Assembly: GCA_963924565.1 (NCBI GenBank)
Contig: OZ004613.1
Location: 19,902,001 to 19,966,000 of the forward strand
DNA: 64,000 nucleotides
Direction: 5' to 3'
Origin: Ascidiella aspersa
Taxonomy: Eukaryota
The notes below the pieces were generated by a model. That model worked only from the letters and a program-made list of their open reading frames with translations. It did not search any database and had not been told where the DNA came from. Below are positions 15,305 to 63,768 of the stretch, one piece after another (position 1 is the first letter of the stretch; each line of letters opens with the position of its first letter). The position numbers and the translations under genes are program-made.

Positions 15305-15385
15305 CTCCACAGTGCCATGAAATACAGAATCGGTCCTAAACTACTACATATACCTATTTTCAGAAAATAACTTAGTGATATTAAA

Positions 15386-21900: not shown

Positions 21901-24900
21901 ACTATTTGTTGCAACCTACATTTTGGGTTATTGTGACAAAAAATGGACTTGCCATTACCTCTTTTGGAGAAGCAAACATTTTGTTATAGTTCAAAAGTTT
22001 TCAACTAACAAATTTTAATATGGTTCGTTTTAAATTTTTTATGTAGGCTATGACGTAAAACATTTATACGATTTCCCTATCCATAAAATACGTTAAGAAA
22101 TGCACCTGGTTAAAATGGATCATCGTATCAACATGTTTGTAATAAATATTACAAATGCAGGTAAAACTTCACTTAACAAAAAACATACCTATTCGAATTA
22201 AAACAAAATTATTGTTTAAAAGTTCACTAAAAAACCAACGAAACAGACAAGATTTGGCCTAGGTCGTGTGCGTTGAGAGCAATCAACACAGGCAGAATAT
22301 TTGTATAATGTATTCACAAATAAAATAAAGTTCCAAGACAGTTACTCTTTGACACGCACTTGTCCTGCTAATTTAAAAATATGAATTTTCGCTTATCACA
22401 GCACATTCGTTCTAAGATTCTATGAATTGTTCTAAACAGGCTAGTTTTAAACTTATGTAAGTGTAGCAGGTGGAGTTCAAGTTGTTTTTAATGCTTGTGG
22501 TACAAATTGATCAATTTAAAACAACGGATTCTTCCTGTCCCATCTTGCGAATCACACTGTCCCATCATATGAAACTCTGATTTCTAAAGACGGGACACAA
22601 CAACGTTTTTTCTAAGACGATTTTATGAAAAAAGTTAGAACGCTAGAGGCAAAGTTATAAGTGTTTTTTAAGCGTAAAGGGCAGAGGTATCAAGTAGGCA
22701 TGATATTATTCAAAATTATTGTTATAATTGAGAACTACAATCATTTGAAAAAACGTGTCCCATCATGGGCAACCTTCCCCTACCTGTCCACCAATTATCT
22801 TCACAGAAGACGCTGGCTGTCTAGCATTGACGAGTTTGCTTCTGACACCGCACTGTAGACCGTCCAACACATGCTGCTTGGTGGCATTGCAGGGTCCCGG
22901 AGAACACTGTCGCATGTTCTCCGCACTGCCGTCACACCCTAATGAGTTAAGGTGGATGAAAGTTAGAATATTACACTAGGCCTATTATTGATAGTCAGAA
23001 ATAGAGATTCAACTTAAAATTTGCCTCAATGAAGCATAACAAAACTAATCAAAAATAACATTCCGCATAATTATTACGTGAATTAAACTTGCTATTTCTG
23101 TAACAAACAAATTTATATTTAGGTTACTATAAATATATTGCAAGAGATCTGATTAACATCCGACAGACAATGTGTGTAAGTTAAGAAAACACAGAGCAGG
23201 AGGTATACCGCGTATGCCAGGGCTGCCGTTTTTGCAGTATCGAGTTCTCTTTTTCACTCCTCCAATACCACAAGTGACGCTGCAGCAGGAAAACGACGTC
23301 CAGGTGGACCAAACCGGACAAGCCTGAAATAGGAAAAAAATGGAAATCCCATGTTGTGGAATAGCTAGGCCTATAGTTTTTTTCTTTAATTTCCACTTGC
23401 TTTAAATTTATTATTTTTTAAATTGTTTGAAACGCGACTATATATGTATATTGGTTTCACTGAGAATAATGTACTTCCTAGTTAATACAACGGTCTTTGT
23501 AAGCAAGAAAAAAATTGGGCAGTAACAAGAAAACAGTTAAAAACCTGAAAGTTACAACTTTTTCTTTCAATGGACTTGCCGAAGCAAGGTTCTGCCGTAC
23601 AATTCCGGGTCCTAGTTCGAAAACCCCAGTTGCAACTTTTCGAACAAGATGAGTATTCGCTCCATGCGTTCCAGGTTGGACAAGGCTGCAGTCAAAAAGT
23701 ATATTTTTTCTAAAACGATGAATAACAGTTACCAACGTAAGATTACGCAGAAAATGCAATAATTACGGCAACTAAAGAAGGTGTAAGGAATTGTAGTTAA
23801 AGGTAAGCGAATGTTTCCCACGTTCAAGCTTTTTACCAAAAAAGTTGTAAATCTTCTTATAATTTACCTGAGTCGGTGTACAGGCCTCGTACATCATGCT
23901 ACGTCCCTGGCACCTTGAGTAAACATGGATAAAGTTGGTCGTATGTAGGCATTCTCTGGTTTTCGACCTGTATCCGACCTGGCTACCGCAATTCGCCGAG
24001 CACGACCCAAACTGAGTCCATTTTGACCAACATGGCGGAGTGTAGCATTCCCTATAGTCCACAGAAGACCCAGGGCACCCGAATGATACACCTAAAAAGC
24101 AATAGAAAGGTAACACTTAATTTTGTGTTTAGCATGTATCCTTTAATTGCGTTAAAAATGATTATAACAACTTTTGTCTTTTTGTATTACACTACAATGT
24201 AGACTCACCGGTAGCTTTTATACAACGCCGAGTCCTGTAAGTCATTCCGCTTCCGCAAGTTTTGCCACATTTCGACCAAGGCTGCCAGTTGGCCCAGAAC
24301 ATTCCACACGAGTTTGGAAACTTACAATTCTTTGTTTCCCTTGGAATCCTTCCACTGCAGCGGGATGGAGCAACCACTACAATTTGTAATAAAATACGTA
24401 TTCACGAATAATTAAAACAATTCTTCGTATAGTTAATATTTTTAAACGCTAATTCATTTCTAATGTTTTCATTTAAAAAACAACCAACTTTAAACCTTTT
24501 TTATCTAAAAAGGGTTATAGATAATTTTCACGAAAAAACAAGCTAACCTTGGAGAGCCTGACCATAGGACAAAGTGGCAGTTATTTTTAAAACATTATCG
24601 TCTCCAGGAATGTCAGTGTTGCGGTGTCTGAAATTAAGTTATATGTTACAAACCTTACAAAATATATAAATACGTGTCAAAAGTACCATAAATCGACATT
24701 TAACAAGACGAACTCACCGAAGCGTGCATTCTTTCACTCTACTCCGAGTTCCGGTGCCGCAAGATTTTGAGCAGGAGCTCCAGTTTTTCCAGTTACTCCA
24801 ACTTGGGCAAGCTTTGTTGCTTAAACACAATCTTTCCTCCCTAGTGTGACTGCTGCAAGGTCTGAAATGTAGACAGGTTGATATAATTGTTAATTTATAA

Positions 24901-37542: not shown

Positions 37543-39121
37543 CCACCCAGGGATTTATGTCTGCTAATTAAAAAGCACATCTCATTGAATCATTAATTTG
37601 CAATCAAAGTTTTATTTTTGACTCTCCTGCAAAAAAGAAAAGTGAGCACATCTGGTGCAGTTAGCTATTAATAGAAAATTTTCCTGACATTCTTCTAAAA
37701 CCAAGCTGGTGTGTACTGTACTGTATATCTTGAACTCAATATTTCGACCTTCTCTAATATTGCGTGTATACCATGTAAGATGTATGCCTTTAATGCAGAA
37801 TAAATTTCCGTGGTAACAAGAAGACGCACCGGGAGATATATGCAGCCTATACCATCTATGTTCATTATACTGTAATTATTATCAATACTATCAAATGATA
37901 TTTAGCGAAACAGCTAAAAACAGGTTTATTAAATACAACCAACAGCACACATCAAAATTGTAGGGCAGCCGTTTTCATGAATATACTACTATTTATCTAT
38001 AATAAATGTTTCTTAATTTGCGGCTAAAAACTTTTCCACTATTTTATTTAAGACTGAGTAGTCCAAGATAGGAGACATAATATTTTTTGCGTTTCACGGG
38101 TCACAAAAATGGACAATAAACTCGAAAAAGATGGAAGCTTCCTTAGCCTCCCTGGTATATTTTTAGGATTTTCTATATATGTTCTGTAGTGTAGTGTACA
38201 CTGTACACGCTACTTTGGGAATCTCCTCAAAATGGTAGGCAAATTAAAAAACTTTTGGGAACAAGTGAATCCAAAAGTGTTAACATGTGACACGTGTGCC
38301 ACAATTAAAGTTTTAATTTTCTACCATTTCGCGAATCTTTTCTGTTTTGTTTACGAAGCAATAGCCAAAGGTTATTCACAGCAAAGCGTAGGCGATTCAC
38401 GTGAACTTACACGATGAAACACCCAAAATCAGCAAAATATTTACAGCCGTAGCAGCATTCTTGGTCGCGATCCAGCACGACCGACCAACAAATAATGAAC
38501 ACTAAAAAAACTTTTGTGTCTACTAGAATACGTAGATGGTTTTCTTACCAGCAGCTAAAATAGGATAAACGCAATCATTGGTAAACATATCAGGCTATAG
38601 TGAACATTTGTAAAGTTAATACCTATGAAATGAGAATTTGGTTCCTAACTTTAATCGCCATCATTGCAGAGCAAATCCAGATAGGATTGGCCCTCCTAAA
38701 ACAATTTAAAAAAAAGTATATTGTTAATTGTGATAGCTACTTGTATCTATCCATACATAAACTATATAATGTAATTTTCACCAGATTTGTGTCAAAAAAT
38801 GTGGTTGTTGAAATTGTTAGCGTGACAAATCCAAAGGGAAAAAGTGTAAGTGTATATGAAAAACAGTTGAAAATACAAAGAAAGTTGAAAGCTATGGAAG
38901 TAAAAAAAATATTTGCGAAGTAAGTTATGCCATTAACAGGCAAATTTACATTACATGAAGAAGATAATTTTTTTCATAAATTAAGTATATTTAGTATTAG
39001 TTGTAATTTAACGCGCAGCCTTTCCACTTGACTAAACAAATTAAATTTACCAACAAAATCTTACGATTTAAAAAAAAGATTATCAGCAGCAAGCATTTGA
39101 AAAGGCAAAGCGCTCAAAAAT

Positions 39122-39246
39122 TTATCCATATAAAAGACCGTTGTTGCAAGTGCCGCAGCATTGCCACCTCCATGAAGGACGAGTGCAAAGACCATTTGCT
39201 CGGACAACTTCGCAGGTGCTAAATCGGGAGTACCTGTGGCGGGCGG
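39122..39246 (-). CDS. Alternative terminal exon of the PCSK5/6-like gene encoding a second PLAC domain
   Basis: Acceptor tttccatttctag, phase 1 matching the donor at 43865; translates (CTD)AARHRYSRFSTCEVVRANGLCTRPSWRWQCCGTCNNGLLYG* with full PLAC cysteine spacing. Confidence 0.8.
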
Positions 39247-39617
39247 CTAGAAATGGAAAAGAGGGTAAATGGCGATTTGACAACAGTTGAGCTTAAAATT
39301 TAAATTGTAAAACGTAAACCTTATATTCATAGCTTTACTCCACCATCCGAAGAGGACTGATTGCCATTTAAGAAAACCTGATAAGTTGGAATCAACCGCA
39401 GCAATCTCGTAGCTACTGTTTGCTTATATTCCGTCTACTTAAAGGAGTTTTTAGCGGCTTAGTGACAAATAATGTTTAGGGCCTAGACTAGTAATTCGAA
39501 AGATGTTATAGGTCATTCTGTAAATATTAAAATAAATTACTGCCAATGACAAGGGTCTTCAATTACTATTTGTTGGCAAGCGGAGAGATTTTTTTTAATT
39601 CGTATGAGGTACAATTT

Positions 39618-39675
39618 TTCTAACACTATATTCATATATTCTAACACTATATTCATATATTCGAACACCATATTC
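39618..39675. repeat. 21-bp tandem repeat, about 2.7 copies
   Basis: ttctaacactatattcatata repeated. Confidence 0.8.
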
Positions 39676-41086
39676 TTGCTTTATGTGGACTCGTTAACAA
39701 ACTTTTTTTGTTTAATCATCAAGATTTTTCAATTATTACTCTGCGATGAGCTTCACCAATTATTTTTTTGGAACGATACCTATGGTAAGTCAGCGAAACT
39801 TGCAAGGTAAACTTGCAATTTTAGCGAAAACTTGCAATTTTAGTTGTAAATGTGTATAAATGGATTTTTAGGGTCTAGAGAAGTCTTTTAACATATTAGT
39901 ATATCCTGTTATAATTTATACATGCTTGGGTATGTTGGAGCATTTTGTTACGAAGTCAATAAGGTTTCATGCCACTGTTACAGCATATCATGCAAACTTG
40001 AAGTAACGAAAAAACGAACAGAGTAAGGAATGAATATATCGAAAGAGGAAATTTTTATAAGTTTTATTAGGATTTACAATGATGTAAAATGTGATTCATA
40101 AAACGCTAATCGTAGCAGACATCAACGGTGCGGAAATTAGGTCCAACACAATTTCGTAGAAAAGAAAAAAAAATCAGCTTTTTAGGAATATATATAAAAT
40201 AGAACTTCAATATATGACAAAAGGGAAAGTAAGGCACAGATGTCAGAAACATGTTGCCGATAAAAAAATTAAAAAAATACGAAAAAATACTGTACACATA
40301 TTTCAAGCGAACAAAACAAAACACTTAAATCATGTCAAGCATCATAGATGCGGTTCGAAGAATAGACATATTTTCGTTCTTATAAAAAACAAGTTTTTGC
40401 TTGCAGATAAAACACAGCATCAAGTTTAACCAATTGCTGCTAACCAAGAAATCTCAGAGCAGCATTGAGGTGATAGATCTCTGAAATGCTGAGCAAAGGG
40501 TTTATTGAAAATCGCAACTTTATAAAATAGGTTTCTAGCGGTTAATACGAGGTAGAAACTAAAAATGGCAGAAATATTTCATCGCTGGTTAAGTGGATAG
40601 TGTTAAGGCAGAGGAGGCAAGTGATACACAAAAATTCAAAGATACATGTTGTAAAAATATAGTAAATCGAAAGCAGTTAACCGCTTCCGGTAAGAAACTG
40701 TGGATAGCACAAGTAATTACCACAACTGCATCTAAAAACTATTTGTTTTCCAGATAGATTAAAAGTGAGTATTTCATACAGCGCATTAAAAGCCTGTGAG
40801 TTATTCGTCTTGTGAGAAGGTTTTACAGAACAGTATATTTTGACAACACATGTAGACCATCAATACATAAAGAATATGAAAAATCGCTAAAAACAAGCAA
40901 AAAATAATGTCATGAAGACAAAATTAGTAATTTCTTAGCAGCAACATTTAAGCGTTCTGTTGCTAGGATATCTGAAACTGTCTCAAAATGATCATTAAAG
41001 TTTGCTGAGAGAACTTTATCCGAAAGTCACTTAAGTTAATGAACAAGGCAACGGTTGGTAGTGCTTAAATTATCACGGGTTTATAT

Positions 41087-44000
41087 TCAGTTTGACCCAA
41101 GGTAGCCGCCAGTCGGCTCTGCATCGGTCGCCGAGTTTGAAGACTCGCCAGAGTACTGTTCGTCATCTGGGTACTTGCCGTAAAACGAGTCAACGAGATT
41201 TTGCATTATAATATCGTTGTTGGTTTCGGTTAAGGTGGCGAATGTGGTACAAGTATGGCAGCAGGTTTCTTTGAAAACGGTCATGTTACACCAGAGAAAG
41301 CGCAGCACCAAGAAGCAAGGGTTGGCCACGTACGTCTTGTTGTAATCTGTACGCGTTTTAACACTGACGGTTAGTAAGGTATTACGCGCCCAGGCAACGT
41401 GCACAGTTAAGAAAGAAGGCAGTAACTAAAATAGGTAAAATGTCAAGGAGCTGCGTTATTTTAAATGTTTGAAGAGAAATGTGAATACATCATGTTGTAT
41501 TCGGTGCTCTCACTTTTAGGGATTTAGTTTCAAATTGGAACTTTACGCCCCTTTTAGGGACAAATCTGGGGATTTTGGTGATCTAGGGATTTTTTGGGGG
41601 ATTTTTAGTCTTATTTTGCAAATCGCATTGTATGATTTGTTAACTAGTTAAGTAAAAGTTAACCGAATTGCAATTTTGAAAAAAAAAACAGGTTCAGAAT
41701 ATACGAGCCTACTTGTTTCTGTTGAAAGTTGATTTGAAAAGTTTAAAGAGTAACTGAAACTGCTTAGCCTATGTAAAACCTGGCATGAATTTGTTGCTTG
41801 TTGCGTTATTGTACATTAAGCATTATACCAACTTATAGTCAATTTTTCTTAATGTGGTCAGGTGAAAGATATAATTTTAATTAAAATGGCACCAGGTGAA
41901 GTACGTCCACACATTGCTGCACAAATGAGTAGCTGAACATAATAAACAATAGTAGGCTAGACCTGTAGGCTACACCAGGGTGGTCCAAACCCAGACCCGC
42001 AGGCCACATGTGACGTCATTGTTCGTGGCCGCGAAGCAATGTTGTATACATGCGCACCGTTAAAAGTTGAATTAAAGAACTCTAAGTGACCAACGAACAG
42101 TACTGCAATTGTTTGGGTATGATTACACCTATCGGGTTATACCATTAAATAAACCAGTTTTTGCGCGAAAACATCTTCGTAATTTGACGAGTGTGTAGTT
42201 TGCAACATCTGTCTTAAAATTTTAGTAAGGTCCGCACGGTTTCCGCAAACATTCTACGACAGTGGTTCTTAACCTTTTCATCTTACCTATCGGTAAAATT
42301 TCAAAACAAATTTTGCGGACCGATGGACCTTCAAACATCAAAATCAACCCAAAATGCAAATATGGAAACTTCCATACAATGAGCAATTTGCTGCTGTTTC
42401 TTTGATATCATACGTGTTATACGTGGTTCTATTAAAGTTTTTCACATACAACTGGTCCTAAAACTAAAGACTTAAACGAGCTGTAGCCTACTTCTAAACA
42501 GTTGGGCACAACACTTGCATTGTGTTGTACGATAAAGTCTAAAGTAGACCATTAACTCTATGTTACGCCACAACTGTTGCAAATTACGAAGCTGGCGAAG
42601 TTCTAAATTTAATGGACAAGCCTTCAACATCTTGCATTTTGTAGTTGAGATTTAAGATTGTAATATATTTGGCGGACCGGCGGTCGAGAACCACTGTTCT
42701 ACGCTTTTAAAATGCAGTCATCTATATTAAAAGTTTTGTCAAATACGCAAATTTTTCGCGCTTTGCGCGCACCATTTTTCCCAGTCTTATAACACTCGAT
42801 TTTATTTGCGCACAAGTTCGACGATAGTAGCAAGTTTCTGGAGCTTATATGTATTTAACGATGCTTTGTGACGTCATTTAACCATTTCATACCCCGACCA
42901 AACAAAAATCGTTGATCCGCTTCTGGTACGCATGTAGCCCACTTTATGTGCCCCGCAAAATATATGCAAGATATATCGTGGCCCGCGATGCTGTCAACCT
43001 TCGACCACCCTGGGCTACACAATGCAGTTATTAAAAAAAGTGGGAATATCTACAGCTCGCTTTTAGCATGTAAACAAGGTTAATTTGTCTGTCATTTGTG
43101 TATAGATAAGGTAATGTGATCACATAGATTAACGTGCTAATTATGGTTTAGGGATTTTTCATGCCATCTGGGGATGTTTTGACATAGCTTCAGGGATTTT
43201 CTGGTTTTCATTTGTGAGAGCCCTGTTTGTATTTTCATTACAATAACCACACCACCAAAACTGATCTACATTTACAACAGGCTGTAGAACAGGGGTTCTT
43301 GAAACTTTTTTACCTCGGACCCCTAAATTGCTTTTTTGTTTAGCGTGGCCCCTGAATGGCTTTTTGCTTAGCCACGGTTGACAAGCAATTTTCAGAGAAC
43401 ACGACATAATTTGCCGTAATACTACAAATAGACCTCAGAAATCTGCCGATATCGACCAAAAACGTGAAAGTGTAAAGTCTACATTCAGTGCAATACCGTA
43501 ACTCTTATTTTTAATGGATTACTTCTTAAATATACACTAATATTTTCAATAGGTCTACATGGACCCCTTAAGAATACCCCAGTTTAAGAACCCCTGCTCT
43601 AGAAGGTGTTTTGCAAATTAGATATGGGTTAATACGGGATTAAAAACTAAAATATTGCTAATAAAAATATTTTGTTTTTATGTGGCAATCTTTTTCACCC
43701 GACAGACAGAAACTATCGCGCCAGACAAATAGAGGATAAAGCGCCTACATGCAGTTACACTTAAAGAGCATCGTGGGCCTACATGCAGTTAGACTACAAC
43801 AGCATCGTGCAAGCTAATGCTTATATTCCTAACACCAGGCTTTGTGGTGTTTCGACATGTCTTACCGTCGGTACATTGGCTGTTGCACTGCCCGCGTGAT
43901 AAGGTCCTGCCTCTCTTGCACATGGTACAGTTGCCGCGACGTGGCCCGTTGCACTGGCGACAAGTCGAGTGACACCTGGAATAAAAAACACGTATGAGCA

Positions 44001-47000
44001 AAACTGACGAACGTCGAATAGAGTCACGTTAATAATAATAGTTCGCGTTTTATTTTGAGCCTCAAATACTTAACGGTCATCTGTAACAGGGTCGGCCGAG
44101 GTATTTTATTCTTTAATGTCAATCAACCGATCCATATATCTTTGCAAACCACAACACAAAAAAGAGCAATACGAGAAAAACTAAAGTACAAAAAGCAAAA
44201 ATATAGATAAATAGTAAATATTAATTGTTATTTACGACAATGTTGCACCAATGTAAAAAAATAATGGTGTGCGCTGGCAGTTAAAAGTTTAGATGACACA
44301 TAAAGGTTTCGACATAATTATGTGTAAAACAAATTTCCCGCTTTGAAGGCTAAGTTAAATCCAAGTACGACAGTACGTGTTCTGCATTACGAAATGATTA
44401 GAACCATTATTATCGACCTAGGTGTTTGCACATTTTTCATTGCAACCTGAGCATAAACCATATATAACGTATTCTTTTTCGTTATAGCCCAAAATGTTTT
44501 AAACGACCTTTACATAACACAGTAATTTAGAAAAATAAAGAAAACCCCAATGTCGTAGATAACCCTAATGTCGTAGAAGCCAGGTTACCTTCTGCAAGAC
44601 TGGCGACGCAGGTCCGGATAAAACGACTATAAAACCGTATATAACGTTATCTTCTTCGTTAAAGCCAAAAATATTTTAAACGACCATAATTGACCAAAGC
44701 CAAATTAATAAAACCATAATGTCGTATAATTGCCGAGTGTACCTCCTGCAAGAACGGCGACGCAGGTCCGGATAAAATGATTCCGGGCAAACTTGCATGC
44801 ATCGGCGTCCGGAGAGAACGTAGCCTTCAGCGCAAGACATGCAGTTGTTCGGGGAGCCGATGCAAGTGCGACAGGTGGGGTTGCAGATGCCACAGCCAAC
44901 CTTGATCGACACAAGGTAAGTACCAGGTCGACAGGACGGACGACAGGTGCCACTTTTGAATCTGAAAAAAGGCCGGTAAATTTTCAGAGTCGTTTTGGTA
45001 AAACATCGTGCCAACCCAAATACTATGAAATAGATTACCGTATTCGTGTTGATAAACAATACGAATTTAAAAACCGAAAAATTACTGTGCAAAACTTGGT
45101 GAACCTTTTCGAAAACTGATTATTAGGAAAATATCAGTTTTATATAATAATCAAGAAACTAAGGAATAAAAATGTTAATTTTGGAGCATAATGGTTGGAG
45201 GTTGTAGCAAGACGTAATAAGAATATCAAAGCCCATACAGATGTAGGTATCATTTTGAACGTTTCGAATAAAACTTTATTCATTTTTAACAAAGAGAGAA
45301 GGCAAAAATGAATAAAGAGTTATTTGAAACGTTTAAAATGATACTTCTTTTGTATGGGCTTTAATATTCTTAAAAATGTTACTGTTTTGAGTAAGTTTGT
45401 TCTCATTACTTTTATCATTGTTTGTTTTAATTACTTTATCTATGCTACGTCGGGTCTGCCAAATAAGCATTTGGTTCTTGATCTGAATAAATATGGTGCT
45501 TCAAATTTGCCTATAGCTCATGACAACTTACATAAATCCAGCGCGGCAAGAGGTGCACTGGCTGCTGCGTTGGTGACATGTTTCGCAAACATCGTCGCAG
45601 ATGCGGCAAGTCTGTGAAACTACAAAGGCAAATGGAAAGTGAGTAAAGCAATAGATGCAAACCTTGGTCGGAAAGAGAAGAAAGTAACACTACAATTTCA
45701 CATGGTTTCCGATTAATAACATTTCTAATATTGATTAACGAAAATTAAACCAAGTAACTCACTTGGCTCCAGGTAGGTTCCCTGACTGCAAGTTCGCACG
45801 CAAGCCCCGTCTACAATGGCGAAGCCGGGATAGCAGGAAGTACAGTTGTGCGAACCTTCGGCGTCGCAAGTCTGGCAGCTTCGCCAGCAATGCTGTGATG
45901 AATTAGCCAAGGCAACAGATATTGCAGCGAGATATTAATTCATAACACTACAAGTAGCCGTTTAAATTTAAGGAAAACTGCCGCATTGTCACCATTTAGC
46001 TATAAAAACAAGTCTCTTTAGTGCTTTATTGTTCAGTATTACGAAGTTAGATTTAATTTTTCAATATGTATGAAAGAGGAACAATTGTCACTATTCGTTC
46101 ACAGTTTACGTCTAGCGAACGTCATAACAAAATGTAAATGAACGTAAAACGAGAGACAACAATTCTTTATCAAAAAGAAAATATATAATGTTGTCAGTGT
46201 TATAGGAGTTTGACAACAGAAATCAACGTTCACTTCGGTAACAACTAAAATTTGAAGCAGAATTCGTCGTCCTACCTGGCAAACTTGATTAGAGGGATCC
46301 ATAAACTGGGAACTCTCACATGCGGCGATACACTCGCCTCGCAGACTCGCCACATGGCGGCAGCGCGTACAATCACGTGCGGTTGGACCACAGCAGCCCA
46401 CACATTCCTCATGGCAATGATCTTGCGGGTAAGCTTAAAGTAAATAAACAAAATCACCAAAACTCTTCCACGCTAACTGGGCGTGGAGAAAATCAAATTT
46501 AAGAGCCTAAAAATCGCGTTTAATAAACTTCAAGTGATTGGATTTGTTCAAGCAGGACATTTTCAATAGCTACAAACGTTTAAACCAGTGGTTCTCAACC
46601 GGGGTCCGCAGCATCCTAGGGTGCCATTTCGAATACTCACGGGTGCCAATAGATATTTGAGAATCTTTAAGAATCTGATTTTTGCTTAACTCTTGTAGAA
46701 TAAATCCAATTATAACTTCCTAACACTGGTTTAAACCAAAACGACAAAAAAATCACAAAAAAGCTTTACCTTCACACATGCTGAAATTAAACTCAGGTTG
46801 TGGATGCGAGTAAGTTCCGTAGAAAATAAGTCGCCAGCTTAGAAGTCGACCACCCCGACTTGCATCCCTGAAAAACCACGACGCCTTTTTATTATTTTTT
46901 TTCAGTTGCGCTATTTTAACTGTTATTATCGACTTCGAGGCAATCCCAGCTGAACTAAAATATACACAAGGGCCATGTGCACCTCACATCTAAAGAAACT

Positions 47001-50000
47001 TACCAGAAACGCAAAAATCCATTATGAATCGGGGAAAACAATAAAATATAGTTTGATATGTACCTGTAGCTCATCATGGCTTTGGTGTCCGTAATTTTAA
47101 GATGCCAGACACCCATCGGGTTCTCGCCCCAGTGGTGGGTGGTCATGAACTCCCAGTCCCGGAAGCCAACCTTGGATCGGTCGAAGTTCCTAGAAATAGT
47201 ACAAAGAACCTTGTCAAAGCTTCTCACAACTAAACGACAAGGTGTTAGAAATTGGAATACATCTATACTTTAAGCCACATTAATCCTCGTTCCGACTACT
47301 TTGTATAAATTCAAGTCGCGCAGAATTTCCTTTGTTCGACCCTTAAGGGAGCAGTTAACAGTTACTGGTCTATTGGTAGATGATAGTAAAATTTCGAAGA
47401 TCCATACACATTAAATTTAATTAGTCGTCGAATCGAATATTTTATTGGTATGAAGATTATTTTTCCTCAAGCGTCCATATGTATGTTTTTAAAACATCAT
47501 CATTTTGGGGGTAAGCGTTTGGGGTTAGCGTGCTGCAAAGGTTAGCAATTAGTAATTTTAAATTAAACTAGCAAAGTTTTTCTGACTTATGCCTTTATCC
47601 ATAAATGCGGTAACTAATCTATAGGCGACTGAGCGCAGACCAGGAGCTATCACTTGGCTTGAAGCTAAAGAAGCAAGATAAACCGGCTTCACGCCATCCA
47701 AATTCGTCGGATCATTAATACACATGCTTGTAATTCTCAATTAGTTTAAGATTCATGGCACTTCCGGATGGACTCTTACCTTCTCTCCAGAATATTTGAT
47801 ATCGTGCCTGACGGTGACGTAAGAAATATCTCGAGTTCGCCTCGCCGCGGATGAATAAGCGTCAAGCGCAAAACCACGTGCTCCAAATATGCGATTTCAT
47901 TGTCTGATCGGTAACAAGCGCGGGTATCCATGGAAACGATTAAAGATTGATGCAGTGGAATATCTCTGTTAAAAATATTTTTAAGAGAAATGTTGTTATC
48001 TGTGTTGCAATGCCTCGTGTCAATACCCTGACATAATTCGAATAAAGTAACCATGTTGAAATGATCTGGCCTAAATAGGGAGTGTTTTGGGTAAAGTGAC
48101 CTGTGTTGGTCTTAAGTTATTCAGAAAAAAATAACTTGGCTTAGATTGAAAAGGTCTTCTTTACAAATGTAATTAAAAAAATAAAACTTTACAAATGTAA
48201 TTAAAAATAGTTATTTACCTCAACGTTTTGTTTTTGTTTTTTCTTATTCGAAATGTTGCTCAGGATCGAATCAGTTGCCCAACCGTTTAACATTTATTTT
48301 GATGTTAATGATTTAACTTAAGCTTGACTTAAATTTGCAGTGAGGATAGCACCTCAACCTGCGCAGTTGACACCTAGGCTCGGTATTAACTTTGTTTTGT
48401 TGCAAATAATTCTTGGGCATAAGTTACCCAGCAAACGACGTATTTAAACCACTGATGGCTTTGTTAAGAGTAAATGTAAAATGTAACGCTGTATTCGTTC
48501 AGTATACGCTAAGTGTAGGCGGTAGGGTTTACAGTACACAGACTAATACGCAGACATCGAAGACACATTTTGAGCATTATACAACAGATAAACAGACGAG
48601 AGTCGAACTCACTTTACCAGTCTTTGCGCCGGTCCCTGGCACTCCCGTTGCTCAGGCACGGCCTTCCAAGTCTTCGCAACGTGCGTCATGGCCGCCGCGT
48701 CCAGCAGGCCGAAGCCGAAAACGTGGGAAACGTTAAAACCTGCCCCGTTCACGGCCCAATCGTTGGCGATGAGTCCACGCGAGTTTGAGGTGCGTACAAT
48801 AATGTGCTGGACGTCCCTCCAGTTGAGCATCGGGTTTGCCTGTAGCATTAACGCCACTACACCAGTGGCCATGGGTGCTGACGCTGATGTGCCTGTGTGT
48901 TGGTGCGTGCACGACCGGCGAAGGTCGGTGGTGATCTGCAAACGAAGCGCTGCGTTTATCAGTCGCCTGTATATTTCTACCTAACGGCGGGTCAGACCAA
49001 ATTCGAAAAGGCCGATAAAATTTAATAGAATGTTGTTCGAACGGCCGAACGTGATTAACTTACCACCGCCAAACCATGATTATTACGTTGAAGGGAGCGG
49101 GAGACTATAAAAGAGTTTCACTGTCTTGCTTCTATCGTACTATTCATTCTGGTAGCTGTATTTATTTACAGTGTAGAAATTTCGTTGTTTTTAAATTTCA
49201 AATCGGAATACACTTATGCAGAATTAGAAAAACACTACGTGGCGCTAAATCACTATAATGTCGTCTGCAAACATAACATAACATAACGGTATTCTTCTTC
49301 AAAGAAAACTGCTTGAGCTATTCGGAAAAAAAACAACCAAACAAGCCTAATGTTATTGACAAAGATGTGAGTCAGCAAAATAGTTTGCTATATACACCTT
49401 TTTATTTAAATGACAAAACAGTGAGCGAACATTGAGTGAAGTGCGAACCGTGACAACCGAGGATGCAACTCGAGAAGATACGGCTGCTGTGCTCATTCGT
49501 ACAGCCGATTATGCGAACTTGACTCCTTCACACTTCAACTAATTATTGGCATCTTTCCACAACACTTTGCAGCAAGGTTAATGGTTTTATTCTCGTCATT
49601 TGAGTAGACTGGCTTTAAAGTAATCTAATACGGCGTGTCGCCCGAAGGTCAACTGATTTTAACTGCAAAACGTTGTACATAAACAAACGCTTTAAAGTGA
49701 AAACGACGTTCACAATAATATTGGACGTTTTCTTGTAACACGAATGTACGTTATAATGGCATTGCAACTGTTCTGTTGCATAATGTCTATAGAAACGACA
49801 TCAGCTCATTCAAAAACATTCATTAATCCCAAAAAGCGCGCATGGCTATTAAACACGGACGGAAAACAGCCTTATGTTTGTCAACACGTTTTAACAGAAG
49901 CATTAGGAAGAAAAAGCGGTCGCGATGATGCAACTTTGGGGAATTTTGTGAGTCAGAGATACAGTCCATCGCAGACTATGGAGCAACGGCAACCCAAGAC

Positions 50001-53000
50001 GCGAAGCAAACAACAATTCCGTGCCCTTCGTTCTTGGACAGGTATTTACCGGAGCAGACTGGCGCGCGCGGATCGCCACAGGAATGCCAAGAGGTCGCTC
50101 CTCGGTCGCTTAATCTGTGTTTCCGTCGTCGCCGTCGCCTCACGAGGCCGCCTGTGCTGGCCCATTAAAATTGCACTGGCCTTCATTTATTCAAAAGTAC
50201 GCCTTTTGAACTAACCCAAAATCGCAGCATATTAATGTCAGTAAAACAATTTCACCTATAATCATTAATAAAGCATAGATATGCTGCTGCTTCCAGGCAT
50301 AGTTAGTGTATACTAAAGAGAATGTTTTACGGTACTTACTTGTAAAATAAGTCTGTTCAGTATATTAATAAAGCATTATAAGTTCTATTGATGTCAACGT
50401 TTTAAATTTTGTCGAAACTTTCAAAAGTGATGAATTAACCGAATATAAGTTACATACAGTTGAACAATACGACTTACGCCAAAATAGTAAAAGCGCTGTA
50501 GACAGCAAATATTTAAAGCAAAGTGAGCCGGCCAGGTAATTAATCGGAACCAAGAAACGTGGCTCGACAAAACAGGCAGAAAAGCGGCGATAATATGTCC
50601 GAGGAGACACGGGGCGCCCGTCAGTAAGCGTTTGTCAGCACTCTGACGCACGACAGGCGACGGGCTTCGGAGACAAAGGAGCCGCTTCGGGGTCGCCGCG
50701 GTCGACAGCCAACTCAAGAGTGGCACTCAACGTTGGCAAAATCGTTAATCAGCCCCCTGCTCCTTGATAATTTCGGAATTTTTCGGGTGAAGGGAGAAAA
50801 TGCGAGTGGCTGCTGGTAGTGCGCGAACAACAGATATGCTTTAATAAGCTGTTGCTACCAGGCATAGTTACATCAATCTACAAAAATATATAAGTATTTG
50901 ATTAATATGCTCTAATTAGGTTAACCTCGTTCAAACGCTACAAGCAAACACCGTAGCCCGCTTTATTGTGGTCGCATGTTACTGCGCAAATAGCAAGCCG
51001 GGCCTTCACTTGGTTATGACTTACGAGTAATTGACGACGCAAACATTAAACCAATATTTACACGCATTTCTTTTCCAGTAAGAACAAACGACAGTTTGAT
51101 GTGATAAAAATGCCATCCTTGCAAAATAAAGCAAGATAACAAAGCCACAAAAGAAAGATATTTTCTGTACTTTTATGTTATGCAAAAACGTTTCTCGTTT
51201 TTTTTTTCTAGAGCTAATTACTGTAGTTTATTCTTTGTTTCTTTCCTAATTGACACTAGTCTGTCTGTAGAACACCATGAATATAGTACGACAGAAATCC
51301 TTTGGGGCGCTGCGCTTACGAATGAGATTGCGTTTTGATTCGCTGCAATTGCACCGTGTAACCACGCAATAAAGAAAAAAAGTAAATATTAGCAAAACAC
51401 AATGTAGTGATTCTGTTCTACTGCGACATAATTTAACGCAAGCAAAAAAACTGTATAAAAGCAAGCCAGCTATATTATAATGGAATACAGGCTGTAACCT
51501 TATGGTCATAGTGTGTGGTTTCTTAGATAGCAGAAATGACAAAGACTTCAATACAACAGGCTTAACAAACCTAAATATTACATTATTTACATATTGCGAT
51601 TTATCTCGTTACTCTTATTATAGGATTAATTTAGGAAATGTTATATAACGTTCCTACTTTCAACTGGACTTTTGTTGATTACGACAATGAAGTCGTTTTG
51701 AAATTTTCAGACCAACATAAAGACCCAACACAACAAGTTTTTGAAAAAACTTGACCCGACGAAGGCCTCGAGGAAGCGGAAGCAATGAGCTCTATGACAG
51801 CGTCGTGGCAATAAAATGGCTAGGATGCTGACCTTTTTGGTAAGCACGAAAACACTAGAAGCCTAATTAAACATTGCAAACACCGCTCGTTCACGATGCG
51901 CAATGTACGTCAAATGTACTGGTTCTTTTTAACGGAGCTTTTTCAAAGCGCCTTTATCTTGAGTTGCGTAAACATGGCTGGAAATGTTATGTTACGCAAA
52001 TTGTAGAAGTAACGGTATACAGCAGTGCATACTACAGACATGTAAAAATGCGTATGGCAAACTTAAGAAAGTAAGTTCTGCAGACATCACGTAAAATCTC
52101 GAGCAGACAGACCCAAAAAGTCTGACACGGGGTCATCCATTAAATGCGATAATCCGGGCCGAGTCTGTATAACAAACTTTTCCGTTCAAATATAACCACA
52201 TTCCGATGCAATGAACCCGTTCCTCCGTGTCACAAGGAATATGCTGGTTGAGCAACCAAAGAAATCGTGCTATGTTGACCAAAAGTTAAAATGCGCATAT
52301 AATATAAAGTCATATTTTTCATCTACAAAAATCAAATAAAGTTACCTTTCTTCGAAATTTGTTTTTGCGGATTTGTCCGCTCTGCCACTAGCCTAATATA
52401 AACACACAAAACGAGATAAGGGAGCTCGAGTTATGTCTGTTAGACAACGAATGAACGGACGAACGCCACCGAAGAATTTCGCCGCGCGTGCCTTCTGATA
52501 TTTACACACGCAGATTCTGCGAAATAAGGCTTCATTATTATTACGCAAGTGTAGGGAATAACTAAAATCAATCAAAATGTAGCAGTGGTTATCTGGAATT
52601 GACAAGTGATTAACGTAGTTTTTCGACATTCGAAGGTAATAGGGATTAGGGAAGTCGGCAAATCTCACATCCAATGTACAGATAATTCAAACCAACATTT
52701 AGCTCTTGGAGCCGACTTAACCGCACGAAAAGCAAGTAGGTAAATATTTTTGTCTTTGGGCAATATTTACTTTAATGGGCCACCTTTGGACAGGTGAATT
52801 GCGCATCATTAAGTCAACAGAATGTTTAGGCGCACAATTTGATAAAGATGCCTCGAATAAGGTCCAGGTATTGGGAATATAATCGTAGGTTTCCATACAG
52901 AAAAAATCTTACCACTTTGCCTTCATATATCTCCCCACTGCTGTAGGTTGAGGCCAAGGTAGATGAACAGCTTTCAAGATACCAGGGCCTGTTGCCGTAT

Positions 53001-56000
53001 TGGGAAACACTGCAAAAAATAAAAGAAATCTATACTGTATTGTTGAATTAATCTCGCGATTACACTTTGTTTTCACAGCTGGACATGTGATAATATTTTG
53101 ACTACGTCATTGAAGTGCTTCCACGAAACTCCAATTAAAAAATATTGTTCGACAAAAGGGCCAATCACAAGCTTTATGCTGGTTCCGCCCCAAAAATCCT
53201 CGCTATGCTGTATCTGAGGGAACGCGTATAAACATTACAAGGGAACAGGTCTAAACCTTTTAACCGAAATCAAACAAGCGAATAACCAACAATAAACAGA
53301 TATACAAAAAAGCCTAAGTTAAGATGTTCGATGTTTTTACAGAATGAACATTTAAAGTTGTGTTGTTTTTCATTTGGAGTGTTATTTTACTGCCTTATCG
53401 ATAAAATGTTGAAAAAATCCATCGTCTCGTTGATCCCGTAAAGTTCTCGCAACTAATGTAAGTGTCCAATGTTTGAGGTCGCATTAACCATAAAAATAAC
53501 ATGATTTAATATTTATCACAAAACACCCACCTGCTAACGCCGATTGTGTAAATGCTGTTGATATATCCGTCACAAGAGCAACTGTCCTTGTTGTGTCCTC
53601 CATTTCCTGATGCCCAAATGTAAATGGCACCGAGTCCGTTTCGACCAGTTTTCGCACCCTTTTCAAACGCGTGCTTGGCCATTGCACCAGGGCCTGAGGT
53701 TTAGGTAATCAATTTGGAATATTATTTTAATGTCAAGCTGCAATACAGCAAAGGTCCACATCTCTTATGTGAAATAACGATATTTTAAAGCATTATGGTT
53801 TGAGGTTGTAGTAAGACGTAATGAGAATATCAAAGCCAATACAGAAGTAGGTATTATTTTGAACGTTTCGAATAAATCTTTATTCATTTTTAACATAGAG
53901 AGAAGGCACTGATTGTCTTTCTGACGTCTGTCTCAGCAGTATATATAAACTTACAACCAGTGCTTCTCTCTATGTTGAAATTTAATATAGAGTTATTCGA
54001 AACGTTCCCAATGATACCTACTTTTGTATGGGCTTTGATATTCTCATTACGAGGTAATAATAAATCTTGCAAATCATCACAGCTCAGAGATTTCACGTAA
54101 ATTAGGCGGCGACGGTTTGCAAAGTTAAAAGACGAAAAAATGAACTTGTAGCGTAACGAAATCTCATGTTTTTTCGGTTAGGAAGCTGGCAAATGCACCT
54201 TCCACTGTAGTTCCGTCGTCGTCTGGCCCCCAAGAAGAGCTGTAAATGTCGACGTGATGAATCGCGTGATTGAGTGATTCAGCTTCAACCCGATCAGTGA
54301 CCTCGCCGTCCAACATACGAACACCTGTTGAAGAACATATTTAAGTCGCCAGGAAATGGAATACGAAACGCCGCACTTATCGCAAAGACGTTTTTCGCTG
54401 ATATTCGCTCAGATAAACAGGTGTGGATCGCAATGCAATCTCTATGGTTATATATTCACTGCGATACATTTTATGGCAAGGTTGCAAAATGCATAATTTT
54501 GCATAGTGCTACAAATATTGAGCTAGCCACTCGTGTATGTAAAAAGTCTACTTATAAACTCCCCGACTATCCATTCTACCGCCTTGTTTGTGAACACGTT
54601 AGTGGTTTAGCTGCATAATATCACTTGATGGGGTTACCTGGTATTAACATGCAAAGAACGTCGTATATAGAGGACAGTGATAATGGTGAACTAGTAGCTA
54701 TTACTAGCAGTAGATGTGACAGCAATGACCTAATGGAATGGACATTTCAAACTCTTGTTTGCTATGTTTACTTCAAATAAACAATGTCTTGAAGCAAATA
54801 TTTGCTTAAACGACTGAGGACAGATACATGTTGCATCTTGTATATTTTTATGTGGTACCTCCAATTTTTGAACCATATGCCACACCAACACTGCATATAT
54901 AGTTATCATTTTCAGCTGAGACTACACCAGCACATCTGGTCCCATGCTTGTTTTCATTGCGTTCATCATAACGGGGTGTGGGGTCATTATCATGTTCATT
55001 GAGGTCAAGTGATGCATCAGGATCCTGAAATCAAAATCAATAAAACACTTATTTGACCCAGCTTATTTAAAATGTTATTTTAACTCCTATTATAATATTA
55101 TATGAAATGTGCATAATAAATTTATTTTTAAAGAGTTAGGATTTTGCAAAAAATAAATAAACACAAACATAGTTTTTTTGTAAATCAGGGTGCTGTCGTT
55201 CAATCCCATCGTCAAGGATTGTTGCAACGACACCTTCTCCAGTATAACCCGCTCTCCATGCATCCACAATTCTCATGCTACAAGGGCAAAAAGTTGAGTT
55301 TCTATCTCCACAATGCTGCAAAAGATAAAAAAATGGGTTTTTACACAATAAGAATAGCACATGTGCTACCTGATATTATTTTGATCATGAATTATTGCAC
55401 AATTAGACAAACACAACAAAATTAGTTCCTAAAATTTAAATTTGTTTATTACCATATACCACATTTGAGACCAAGAAGGGTCATTCGGAGATCGATTTAA
55501 CAAAACTGCATCACGCTTCACTCGTTTTACTACTTTGAGGCGCTCGACTGCAATTACCTTAGAAGTAAAGTTGTTATTGTTTTACAATAATAAGGAAAAA
55601 TATCTTATTTTTCCAGTTTATTGTTACCTCTGGAGCTCCTGCTAATTGTTTAATCTTATGTATTTGTCTGTTAAATTTTTCAAGTGAGCGCTTTCGAATT
55701 CTTCGGTTTACAAAAATGTACCAATCATCCAACACTGGCATCTTAAAAATGGAATAAAAAGGGTAATGAAAAAAAAATAATAAAACAGGTTGCGGTAAAG
55801 TAAGCTTACTTTGGTTTGATAGATAAAATTAAGCCTCTTAGCTAAAGCTTTTGCAACAGACTCCCCACCAGATATTTCCACTGCGAACTCATTTAAATAC
55901 ATGTTAGGTCTTTGTTCTTCATGATACAGACTTTGATGAGTGTGGTGTCTTCTTTTGGATGCAAAAGAAGATTGGAATACAAGGCACAAACACAATGAAA

Positions 56001-56058
56001 GAAATAATAATGCAAAATGAATGTTGACTCTCCAACGTGGGTGAGGTTTGGAATCCAT
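41087..56058 (-). CDS. PCSK5: Proprotein convertase subtilisin/kexin type 5/6-like (soluble PC5A/PACE4 architecture), 18 coding exons
   Basis: Phase-consistent exons 56058-55810, 55741-55628, 55557-55453, 55315-55169, 55024-54859, 54324-54199, 53693-53531, 53009-52913, 48935-48613, 47965-47780, 47189-47064, 46867-46770, 46433-46276, 45892-45763, 45619-45532, 44961-44743, 43975-43866, 41346-41087. Signal peptide, RVKR cleavage site, [28 protein letters not shown] domain, 5 furin-like repeats, PLAC. Probably a pro-ortholog of PCSK5 and PCSK6. Confidence 0.92.
41976..43012. mobile_element. Middle hAT-type element of the nested stack
   Basis: TIR CAGGGTGGTC...GACCACCCTG; perfect TSD GGCTACAC. 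Confidence 0.88.
42260..42696. mobile_element. Inner hAT-type MITE of the nested stack
   Basis: TIR CAGTGGTTCT...AGAACCACTG; TSD TTCTACGA/TTCTACGC. Confidence 0.85.
43290..43596. mobile_element. hAT-type MITE, family A copy 3 (diverged)
   Basis: CAGGGGTTCTTGAAAC...GTTTAAGAACCCCTG; TSD CTGTAGAA/CTCTAGAA. Confidence 0.85.
44453..44780. repeat. Tandem duplication of a PCSK5-like exon 3' end and its donor
   Basis: Two ~155-175 bp units, each containing tatataacgt..ttcgtta..aaacgacc, aatgtcgta and ctgcaaga..ggcgacgcaggtccggataaaa. Confidence 0.85.
45186..45372. mobile_element. Foldback MITE family F copy 1
   Basis: Arms taagaatatcaaagcccataca / tgtatgggctttaatattctta; homolog at 53790-54051. 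Confidence 0.8.
46586..46728. mobile_element. Short hAT-type MITE
   Basis: CAGTGGTTCTCAACC...AACACTG; perfect TSD GTTTAAAC. Confidence 0.75.
53790..54051. mobile_element. Foldback MITE family F copy 2
   Basis: cgtaatgagaatatcaaagcc...ggctttgatattctcattacg; shares the left flank with the 45186 copy. Confidence 0.8.
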
Positions 56059-58753: not shown

Positions 58754-59106
58754 ATTATGAGGTAACTACAATTTTAAAAAAACATTTGTAATAGCCGTGT
58801 AATTAATTGACAGTTTCTTTTTATTTCAAGTGAAACATTATTGATTAATATGTACAACGAAAACCAGTTGCGAATCTAAGAAAATATTTTCATTTGAAAG
58901 AACATACCGAAGTGTCTTTACTCTTTATACATCATAAAAATTGACTTTGTGTGATCACACCAGTGGTCTAGAGATAGATAGTCTGCGATATTTTTGTAGA
59001 GGCGACAAAACGCTGACACACTTTACTAGAAAAGATGGTCGCCTTTGATAACATAACGTGACCTACAAATGGTGGAAAAGGCCGCTGGTCAAACGAAGTT
59101 AGCCCA

Positions 59107-62100
59107 TCACACGATGCCGTAGAACTTGAGAGAGCGATCCATGCCACAGGAGGCGACAAAGCGCGCGTTGTTTCCGAAGCGCACCCCAGTGGTGAGGGCT
59201 GTGTGCTCCGTGAAGGTCTTCAGCTCCTGCCACTGCTTGCACAGGTAGATGCGAAGATCGCTTCCGGCAACTGCCAGGTACGAGCCGGACTGGTCGAATG
59301 TGAGAGACTTGACCTGTTATAAAAGTGTTTTTTTGAAGACAACGATTAGGGCGCAATGCTATGATTGGGTAAAGAAAGTAGCAAACATTAAAACGTAAAA
59401 AGTCTTTAGTTTCCACCTAAGGGTTATAATTTAACTCGATTGTCAACCAGGGTGGCGCAGCACCCTTGGATGCCATTTCTAATGCTTTTTGTGTTGGATT
59501 AGACCGGATAAAAAAAGTTGTTTAAGAGTTGATGTGTGCTGTTCCAGTTCCGATGTTGTGACATTCTAATGAATTACCAACGGTAAAATCTTGTAGGGGT
59601 GCCGCAATCTATTTATTATTTTTGAGGGGTGCCGCTAGAAATAAAAGGCTGAGAAACGCTAATTTAACTTATATCGTATAAGCATAAAAGTAAAAAGAGT
59701 AGGAAAACGTGTTGACGCTCAAGCAGAGTTAATGGTCAAATAACAATTTCTACAGTAACACAACGCCGCAGACCTCGTATCCCTCGTCCATAGTGATAGT
59801 CTTGAAGTTCTTTAGTTTGCGCAAATCCCAAAGCTTGACGGATGAGTCCTCGGCGGCCGTGGCCAAATAGTACCCGTTCTCGGAGAAAGCGATGTCGGTG
59901 ATGGGACCAGTGTGGCCTGGAAAGTTGGCCACATTCGTACGCTCCTGCAAAACAATATTGCAATTAGGAATTACGCCTGAAACACTAACTAACGACGGTT
60001 AAGATCTGCGCACCCTGGTATTTTATAAAATCTTTTCAAAACCTCATATGCAAAATTACACGGAATTTTACAACATTAAACTTAACATTGTGATTAACAA
60101 CTTATCCTGATCAAAAAACAAGTGACAAACCTTTAAGTCCCAAATCTTGATCTGGTTGTCAACAGTTCCGGTTCCGAAAATTAGACCATCGGGGTGAAAT
60201 TGGGCACACGTCAGTGCTAGAATAAATTGGCAGTTATTAAATCGTCTAGCAGTATTAGAAATTTCCCACTGTAAGAATATTTCGGATGACTGTAGTATTT
60301 TAATTACAAATATGTTAAACCATAAACACAAAAAAATTGGCGGCATTTTGGTGTTACTTTTGAAAATATGCATTATATCTGTTAAATTTAATTGATTTCA
60401 TTGAATCAAATCGACGTTTTTACTAGGCTGCAAAGAGTCATTTTACAATCTTAACAAATTTAAGCACGAAAGACAGTTCATGCACGGTTGCAAACAGTTA
60501 ATTGCCTAAATGTATTTGTACAACCGATGAAGTTTGTTCCGCAGTCAGTAAGTCAGTGATTTTGTTTGCTTGAGGTGCGCTTAATTGTTTTTTTTTTGCC
60601 TTTGGACTTCTAGGGATTATATCGTCGTCGGACAAATGGAGCGGCGACATCACACTGTGCGCTAGTTTCTACCAGGGCTTTGGAGCAGTCGTAAATGTTA
60701 AACGGCTCCGGCTTCAGAGCTCTCTTTTATCATAGGCTAGCTCCAGCTCCGGAGCTTATTGAAACCACTACTCCGGCTCCAGCTCCGGCTTCATTACTTT
60801 AAAAACTGAGGTTTAAGGCTGAACGCTTAATTTGCAATATCTAGCGTTTAAAAATATTCACAAACGAAACACCACAATGGTTAGTTAGAAAAGGTGCGCC
60901 AAAGAGGCAACAATTCTTAATTTCGTGCCATTTAAATTTCACGTAGAGCTCCGGCTCCGTTAAAAATGTACGGCTCCGGGGCTCCGGCTCCGGCTCCACG
61001 CTCCGGCTCACAAGCCCTGGTTTCTACACGGGTTCGGGCACATCTTGAACAGCGCAAAACCAAAAACATAGTTAGCGCAATTATGTGCGTGACCGTAAAT
61101 ATCAAAAAGTTATAGCCTTGGTATTTTTCCTTTACCGTTGCGAAGTTAGGACTTTTATGCCTAATCGCATTTGCAGTATGTTTATTTAATAGCCCACAAT
61201 TTTGACAGAGTTTGCAAAATACCGCGATCATTGCAGCGTTTTTATACCAAATCAGTCTTTATTTTTAAATGGGTTACGGGATTTTCTTATATTAGAATCA
61301 GTTACTGCGTGGCCGTAGGACTCAAATTAAAGCCAATGTTGCGAAGTTAAGACTTTTAAGGTCTGTTTTCAAAAAGGGTGAAATTATAAACCGTAATCAA
61401 ATTAGCCGTTTGCGAAGGCGCCGCTTCATTAAATCTTTACCCGATAACCATTTTGCACCGAAAATACGTATTCCAGTGAAACATGCGCAAATAAAAAAAC
61501 ATATATTTATCGAATGTGTACAGCCAGGTAGTAAAACTTTTAGGGTGAAAGAAACATTTTATGCAGCAACGTTTTCTGTTCGTAGCCTAAGTCATGCAAA
61601 TGGTGGTACACGCAAATCGATAAAGAGTCGGTTTTACATGGGCGTACAGCCAAATGGTCTTCTCTTAATCTTAATGAGTCTCGCCAATAAACGATTTTTC
61701 TCACAGTACTTTACTGAGTTTTTCATTGACTGACACAGAGAACAATCATTTTTAAATTTTTGGTTATAACACGAGGCTAGTAAATTTGGACATGGTACAA
61801 CGTTATATGCAATAGTGGTGATAGCATAACATGATGGATTCTTACATTTTGTTTAACTAGAAAATATTTAGGTGAACCTGGCACATAATCGCGCTTATTA
61901 CAGCGGTAATTAATTAATATCACCGGGACAACGTCAGTAGTCTTTTACGAGTTAAAAAAACTTGTATATATTCTATATAACCTGGGCAAGGCCACGTATT
62001 TCGTCTAGCAGTGTTTTGTCCGTGTATGGTTCTAGGTGAGTCCGCGAGCACCCTTAGTTTTCAATTTTTAATACAATACTATCCTGGTTGCGTACATAGT

Positions 62101-63396: not shown

Positions 63397-63768
63397 CTGG
63401 AAATTATTAAAAATTAGTAATCAAGATATCAGCAACTCTGGTATCGCTGAGCGGCCCTAGCCCTAACGGACTTAAGGCTAAGCATAAAACTTCTGAAGTG
63501 CGTAAAACATTAGGGTTAAAAAATTAATAACACATTATCATTTAAACCAGAAAGGCAACCTGCATGGCGCATAGTCCTGTGGCTGTGGGTCGCATAAATT
63601 GTGCAACATTTGGCGAAGGCCAAAACTTATACACAAAACCAGTTCGTTTTTGTGCCCGAAGAAGAATGCATGGGCATCCCACCCAAGATTGAGACCAGGA
63701 CTGCGGATTAGGTTTGAAACAAACAGAGTCTGGCTCCGGCTCAAGCCAAATAAACTGACTCTGTACAG

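Follow-up and report, generated by a model that had tools for sequence, protein, structure and literature searches.

Two alternative last exons, each completing a PLAC domain, in a PCSK5/6-type proprotein convertase gene of Ascidiella aspersa: a proposed address switch

The DNA analyzed here is a stretch of 64,000 nucleotides (nt) of Ascidiella aspersa contig OZ004613.1, which we call the window and whose positions are counted from its first letter. It consists of AT-rich animal DNA with zero N and a guanine plus cytosine (G+C) content of 0.32-0.41, and carries on its minus strand a gene that, by its sequence, is a secreted proprotein convertase of the PCSK5/PCSK6 type. Two transcript forms share the body of this gene and part at its 3' end, where a proximal and a distal last exon each complete a PLAC domain begun in the last shared exon. 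The Pfam scans were made on one exon frame at a time. They recovered an S8_pro-domain match (E value 6.3e-4) and Peptidase_S8 matches on four of ten exon frames (best E 8.3e-15), followed directly after the catalytic domain by a P domain (PF01483, P_proprotein) on two frames (33.8 and 43.9 bits for a cut-off of 21; E 3.6e-8 and 2.7e-11). The motifs DDGIE, HGTRCAG, SGNGG and GTSASAP can be read in the convertase exon frames, and we take them to be the Asp/His/Ser triad and oxyanion Asn motifs of an S8 protease. Furin-like or Furin-like_2 matches were obtained on four of the six Cys-rich exon frames, every one of them under the cut-off when scored singly. The reading frame points to a probable start codon at 56058, where it would open a hydrophobic leader.

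Searches of representative proteins point towards PCSK5/6, as against furin or PC1/2/7, as a possible affiliation. With phmmer, the last shared exon matches the repeat arrays of PCSK5-like representatives, and when exon scores are summed over the 150 listed representatives, a bird PCSK5 comes first and a paddlefish PCSK6-like protein fourth. A search with the catalytic exon gave 7427 matches at E<=0.001, whose top identities reach only ~60-72% (the 72% belonging to P0018, a genomic fragment), and the PLAC ending CC.[TS]C occurs in only 1 of the 150 listed representatives; no close orthologue thus seems to be present among them. The animal's own genome holds four P-domain loci, and the convertase locus of the window is the only one with PLAC matches nearby. 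The strongest P-domain match of the genome (69.5 bits, G000:C2:27011674-27011931) lies elsewhere, inside an uninterrupted open frame of 728 residues, and may represent an intronless convertase paralogue, unlike the intron-rich gene of the window.

The 3' part of the gene, where the two forms diverge, could be delimited to the nucleotide at its splice sites (Table 1). The last shared exon reads ag/G TGT ... GAC G/gtaag, with its donor GT at 43865-43864, and ends on ...SQCTD plus one base, that is, in phase 1. Its upstream junction (44743 to 43975) and its reading frame are fixed by a contig of sequencing run X3 (described below), which continues from the shared exon (43975-43977) into letters identical to the window from 44745 onward. 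Both terminal exons begin in the matching phase 1: the proximal one after ...acag, with the split codon G+AT and a stop codon at 41089-41087, and the distal one after ...ctag, with the split codon G+CC and a stop codon at 39124-39122. The distal exon encodes ARHRYSRFSTCEVVRANGLCTRPSWRWQCCGTC, followed by the tail NNGLLYG. Each terminal exon has its own stop, its own 3' untranslated region (UTR; in contigs at least 1.1 kb for the proximal and at least 0.87 kb for the distal form) and its own AATAAA. From the length of the X3 contig, the distal UTR is estimated to extend ~474 nt past 38250, to roughly 37776, with AATAAA at 38048 and 37930; this end below 38250 was not seen directly, nor were the poly(A) ends of either form.

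An original prediction, made from the letters of the window, had placed the shared, proximal and distal exons and given their peptides, all of which hold on re-reading. The acidic tail of the proximal exon, put there at about 50 residues, counts 53, and the distal exon, said to be absent from the track of open reading frames (ORFs), does fall below it, as its frame is a TTG-started ORF of 53 residues and the default minimum is 60.

Table 1. Features of the convertase gene in the window, with both alternative 3' ends.
Feature	Position	Strand	Description
Shared gene body, both forms	43866..56058	minus	Probable start with hydrophobic leader, S8 pro-domain, S8 catalytic domain, P domain, ~5 furin-like Cys-rich exons
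Cys-rich exon before last shared exon	44743..44961	minus	3' end, followed by gt, fixed by X3 contig; 5' end probable, from AG and frame
Last shared exon	43866..43975	minus	Furin-like repeat, then PLAC Cys1 and two residues
Proximal last exon, coding	41087..41346	minus	PLAC Cys2-6, two N-x-T sequons, 53-residue acidic tail, stop
Distal last exon, coding	39122..39246	minus	Basic PLAC Cys2-6, 7-residue tail, stop
Proximal-form 3' UTR	39920..41086	minus	X3 record 20 continuous over 39920-41346; AATAAA at 40068-40063, another at 40506-40501
Distal-form 3' UTR	38250..39121	minus	X3 record 17 (1501 nt) on 38250-39246, extends below; X4 reads over 38447-39037

Four sequencing runs were compared with positions 38250-44150 of the window: X1, X2 and X3, from one study and of a kind not on record, and X4, raw reads of stranded RNA under the same species label. 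X1 and X2 run across exons and introns at a flat single-copy depth (~109 and ~61, respectively) and behave as DNA. The depth of X3 is 136.3 over 38250-39246, 72.6 over 39920-41346 and 1-10 in the unique parts of the introns; this rise over exons and fall over introns is the behaviour of a transcriptome. One X3 contig (1501 nt, depth 136.3) leads from the distal UTR through 39246 straight into 43866, skipping 4619 nt, and another (1457 nt, depth 72.6) leads from 39920 through 41346 straight into 43866, skipping 2519 nt. Both skipped stretches have CT..AC ends, which correspond to GT..AG on the minus strand. Neither joint was found in the DNA-like runs X1 and X2, and therefore neither represents a processed DNA copy. 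The junctions 43866-41346 and 43866-39246, which had been put forward from the letters of the window, are hence both present in contigs of an RNA-like run at comparable depth, and the two exons form a real alternative-last-exon pair that places two PLAC endings on one catalytic body. No third joint from the donor at 43866 occurs among the joints listed. The position-weighted X3 depth of the shared exon (~214) is close to the sum of the two ends (208.9), so the two forms account for nearly all transcripts, at a rough ratio of 65:35 favouring the distal one.

In most stranded libraries, a first mate on the plus strand denotes minus-strand RNA. Over 38447-39037 and 40023-41204, all first mates of X4 map to the plus strand (mean depths 2.6 and 1.8), and both UTRs thus appear to be transcribed on the strand of the gene. 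Coverage falls to zero in the bin 39826-40022.

These data bear on whether the distal exon could be a dead duplicate or belong to a different transcript, which we consider very improbable. Its absence from the ORF track and the presence of a thrombospondin type-1 (TSP1) exon further downstream on the same strand (23775-24116) could be read that way. The contig that joins 43866 to 39246, however, continues through the stop codon into at least 1 kb of UTR and has the higher depth of the two; the distal frame is intact and is the better PLAC match. The original prediction had named a lack of reads across this junction, combined with a lack of conservation of the exon, as grounds for giving up the distal exon, and the X3 contig carries exactly this joint.

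The X4 reads differ from the window at 40528, 40567 and 40593 in the proximal 3' UTR (in three of the three to four reads at each position), and 112 of 142 are only 95-99% alike to it, so X4 comes from a polymorphic or a different population. Such polymorphism in the species would leave room for an assembly or haplotype artefact, in which two alleles were placed in tandem and only mimic a two-exon layout. This explanation is hardly credible, since DNA-like contigs of X1 and X2 cross both exons at single-copy depth, record 9 of X2 spans 38250-41533 without a gap, and the two exons are unlike each other in DNA as well as in protein. A separate feature of this region is a very high-copy repeat at 42190-43174, within the intron between the shared and the proximal exon, where the word depth in X1 rises to 76,270 compared with ~109 for single-copy sequence. 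X4 RNA reads fall on both strands of this repeat, and many variant copies of it appear as short skips with replaced letters.

The layout is that of an ordinary alternative-last-exon pair, the intron of the distal form (43865-39247) enclosing the whole proximal exon together with its UTR. The single donor at 43866 is spliced either to 41346 or, past the entire proximal unit, to 39246. Pyrimidines fill 8 of 18 positions before the proximal acceptor, a weak tract with a TACTAAC box upstream, and 16 of 18 before the distal one, a strong tract. The choice between the two may be one of competition, in which the weak proximal acceptor and proximal cleavage and polyadenylation would be set against splicing to the strong distal acceptor.

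Both endings belong to the PLAC family (PF08686), the C-terminal six-cysteine module also found in ADAMTS- and papilin-type proteins and in PCSK5/6. Cys1 is encoded in the shared exon and each terminal exon supplies the remaining five cysteines; both exons space them 8/8/2 after Cys2, a pattern shared with three further PLACs of the genome (L001-L003) and with the PCSK6-like protein P0041. With intact frames and this spacing, the claim that each downstream exon completes a six-cysteine PLAC split after its first cysteine stands. Scored with the PLAC hidden Markov model on the exon peptides alone, that is, without Cys1, the distal exon exceeds the cut-off of 26.4 bits (28.2 bits, E 3.1e-6), whereas the proximal exon stays under it (21.3 bits, E 4.3e-4), so that this check, proposed beforehand for both isoforms, bore out the distal ending and not the proximal one. 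When all six frames of the complete 308.6-Mb genome were scanned for PLAC, 22 matches came out at E<=10, with the two exons in fourth and fifth place. The distance between them is 2.1 kb, and both directly follow the sole PLAC-associated convertase locus; this combination of rank, spacing and adjacency is far beyond chance expectation. Three other strong PLAC loci of the genome hold the whole domain in one open frame, whereas the window gene splits it after Cys1 plus two residues, a position that makes an exchange of endings possible. The same scan returned two near-identical weak PLAC-like frames (L012 and L013, at G000:C1:12355628 and 12393998; 18.1 bits each) located 38 kb apart, which suggests a recent tandem gene duplication.

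The two endings had been said to share little beyond their cysteines, and their best local alignment indeed contains five identical residues, only one of them not a cysteine. The accompanying idea that one exon arose by duplication of the other found no support: the two PLACs score 34 against each other, less than any other of the 15 pairs compared, and this score was reached by 313 of 1000 Cys-preserving shuffles (shuffle counts apply to each single pair among these 15). A search of 38900-41600 for DNA direct repeats linking the two exon regions gave only short chance matches, and no paralogue of either terminal exon was found elsewhere in the animal's own genome. Among the pairs compared, the distal PLAC scores best with that of the paddlefish PCSK6-like protein (71, with 12 identities, 7 of them outside the cysteines, and 0 of 1000 shuffles reaching it), and the proximal PLAC with a TSP1-linked PLAC elsewhere in the same genome (68, again 0 of 1000 shuffles). 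The paddlefish PCSK6-like isoforms X1 and X2 (names unrelated to those of the runs) are distinguished by three extra residues, inserted exactly two positions past PLAC Cys1 (P0156, P0159 and P0161 versus P0041 and P0151), which suggests that an exon junction at this position is common to the fish gene and the window gene. We infer that the distal exon is likely the ancestral PCSK6-like ending, because of its higher PLAC score, its PCSK6-like best match and this apparently shared junction. The proximal exon would then be either a very old duplicate that has since changed greatly or a PLAC taken over from another source. Word searches with each exon peptide gave no candidate among proteins of 0.55-1.75 times the query length, a range that leaves them silent on full-length kin, and searches of solved structures gave no match under E 0.1. 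The single match from a metagenome scan (L027) was set aside as chance, lying antisense inside an ORF of 237 residues on a contig with 51% G+C and a dense array of microbial-type ORFs.

The two endings differ strongly in charge. The distal exon peptide has an isoelectric point of 9.4, a net charge of about +4.8 and no sequon. The proximal exon peptide has a net charge of -6.2, with the two sequons located in its PLAC part; its tail alone, with nine acidic residues versus one basic, has a charge of about -8.6. The contrast of a basic and an acidic C-terminus, on which the original prediction had based its proposal of a targeting switch, is thus present. Within the proximal tail, a Tyr and a Ser-Gly next to acidic residues resemble what we take to be consensus sites for sulfation and glycosaminoglycan attachment. 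The highest Kyte-Doolittle mean over 19 residues is 1.39 for the proximal ending, inside its PLAC, and -0.24 for the distal one. As neither ending contains a stretch resembling a membrane span, the pair is not a switch between a soluble and a membrane-bound form of the PC5-A/PC5-B kind.

PCSK5/6-type convertases process growth factors and matrix proteins into their mature forms, and the location of the enzyme decides what is cut; alternative C-termini are a known route for setting this address. A cationic region of the Cys-rich domain of PACE4 is reported to tether PACE4 to heparan sulfate proteoglycans (PMC9296861). By analogy, the two endings would provide a single catalytic unit with two addresses, outside the cell or in the secretory pathway. 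Tethering to polyanionic matrix or to proteoglycans of the cell surface would be promoted by the basic, sequon-free distal PLAC (about +5), and the N-glycosylated proximal PLAC with its tail of about -9 would rather yield a form that is not tethered and is sorted differently. On these grounds, a switch in targeting or tethering is plausible, and our judgement leans, if slightly, towards a PCSK5/6-type gene whose two alternative PLAC-completing last exons act as an address switch.

The switch might instead act inside the cell, with one ending routing the enzyme into granules of the regulated secretory pathway and the other into constitutive secretion. A granule-sorting signal is reported to lie in the last 38 residues of PC5-A, which are unique to it (PMC2121096), and the alternative part of the window gene is of about the same size and occupies about the same place. 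Yet the strong charge contrast fits matrix tethering, of the kind described in PMC9296861, at least equally well. Taken as a whole, this explanation seems unlikely to us, although an intracellular sorting role as such may be nearly as likely as the specific pairing of a tethered basic form with a freer, acidic and glycosylated one.

Several points weigh against reading the two endings as an address switch. Each joint is carried by one Logan contig from one run, X3, of unrecorded kind, and no joint appeared in X4 at the three-read listing threshold, with ~6/100 of that run read at a depth below 5. On the shared-exon side of each joint lie only 30 letters, one fewer than a 31-letter rule of thumb; this overhang is expected and not suspicious, because it equals k-1 in a 31-mer graph that branches at the shared exon. 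The assignment of ancestral and derived exons rests on peptides of ~30 residues and one vertebrate PLAC, and the differences in binding, glycosylation and localisation are putative. Moreover, purifying selection on either exon is conjectural; the proximal PLAC scores under the Pfam cut-off, as said above; and the balance between the two forms seems much alike in X3 and X4, giving no sign of regulation. These last three points would also fit a situation in which both joints are real and one of the forms, the proximal one being the likeliest candidate, arose by functionally neutral exonisation within this lineage and entails no targeting switch. Such an origin would have to account for 85 codons kept open in the proximal exon with the exact 8/8/2 cysteine spacing of PLAC, and for a form that has its own polyadenylation signal and makes up about one third of the transcripts, and we regard it as improbable.

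C-terminal isoforms of convertases are a well-known theme, of which the Fur1 isoforms of Drosophila, derived from one convertase gene, are one case. In C. elegans, BLI-4 has many C-terminal isoforms produced from alternative 3' exons, only some of which include the Cys-rich domain (PMC10538796). The BLI-4 and Fur1 isoforms gain or lose whole domains or a transmembrane segment, whereas in the window gene a small domain is replaced by a divergent version of itself. The vertebrate PCSK5 gene resembles it in joining one catalytic body to C-terminal variants, PC5-A and PC5-B, from multiple mRNAs (PMC2121096), but PC5-B bears a long membrane-bound extension and both endings here are soluble PLAC modules. 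Closest in arrangement is human PCSK6, where an alternative terminal exon swaps the C-terminus of a PLAC-ending convertase (PACE4-FL versus PACE4-altCT); this swap is stated to change the location of the enzyme, PACE4-altCT being retained inside cells, and is described as arising in tumours (PMC9001653). In the window gene, each of the two endings is a full partner for the PLAC begun upstream, and each is abundant in RNA samples.

No description of alternative PLAC exons, or of an exchange of PLAC for PLAC, in a convertase was found in the literature searched, whose coverage stops short of subscription journals. The words 'splice' and 'isoform' occur 0 times in a preprint on Helobdella convertases (10.1101/802215), and the whole word 'PLAC' does not occur in PMC8553125.

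To our knowledge, the PLAC domain itself has no clearly assigned function. The gene offers a clean pair for probing its contribution to heparin or matrix binding, sorting and range of action. The apparent junction shared with the fish PCSK6-like gene also hints at the origin of the vertebrate C-terminal isoforms. One may speculate further that an exchangeable PLAC is an old chordate device, the PLAC of the ancestral PCSK5/6 having already been divided behind Cys1, allowing alternative cassettes to define where outside the cell the enzyme goes, with these roles later divided between vertebrate PCSK5, PCSK6 and their isoforms. We think this rather doubtful, more so than neutral exonisation or sorting inside the cell; were it true, the gene would constitute a natural experiment on the role of a poorly understood domain. 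The practical weight of the pair is modest until conservation and differential use of the two endings are shown.

The window contains several other genes. Directly upstream of the convertase, on the same strand, lie exons of a Prp19-type WD40 gene (59102-63420; WD40_Prp19, E 2.8e-24 and 1.6e-9). Downstream, the minus-strand open frame at 23775-24116 encodes a thrombospondin type-1 repeat (TSP_1, E 0.0033, under the cut-off) and may belong to a distinct gene with TSP1 domains. Further along, a KTI12 homologue with two exons occupies 15371-17711 on the plus strand (E 2.1e-24 and 8.6e-16), and C2H2 zinc-finger exons, accompanied by a long acidic/basic low-complexity stretch, are found at 4892-8461 on the minus strand.

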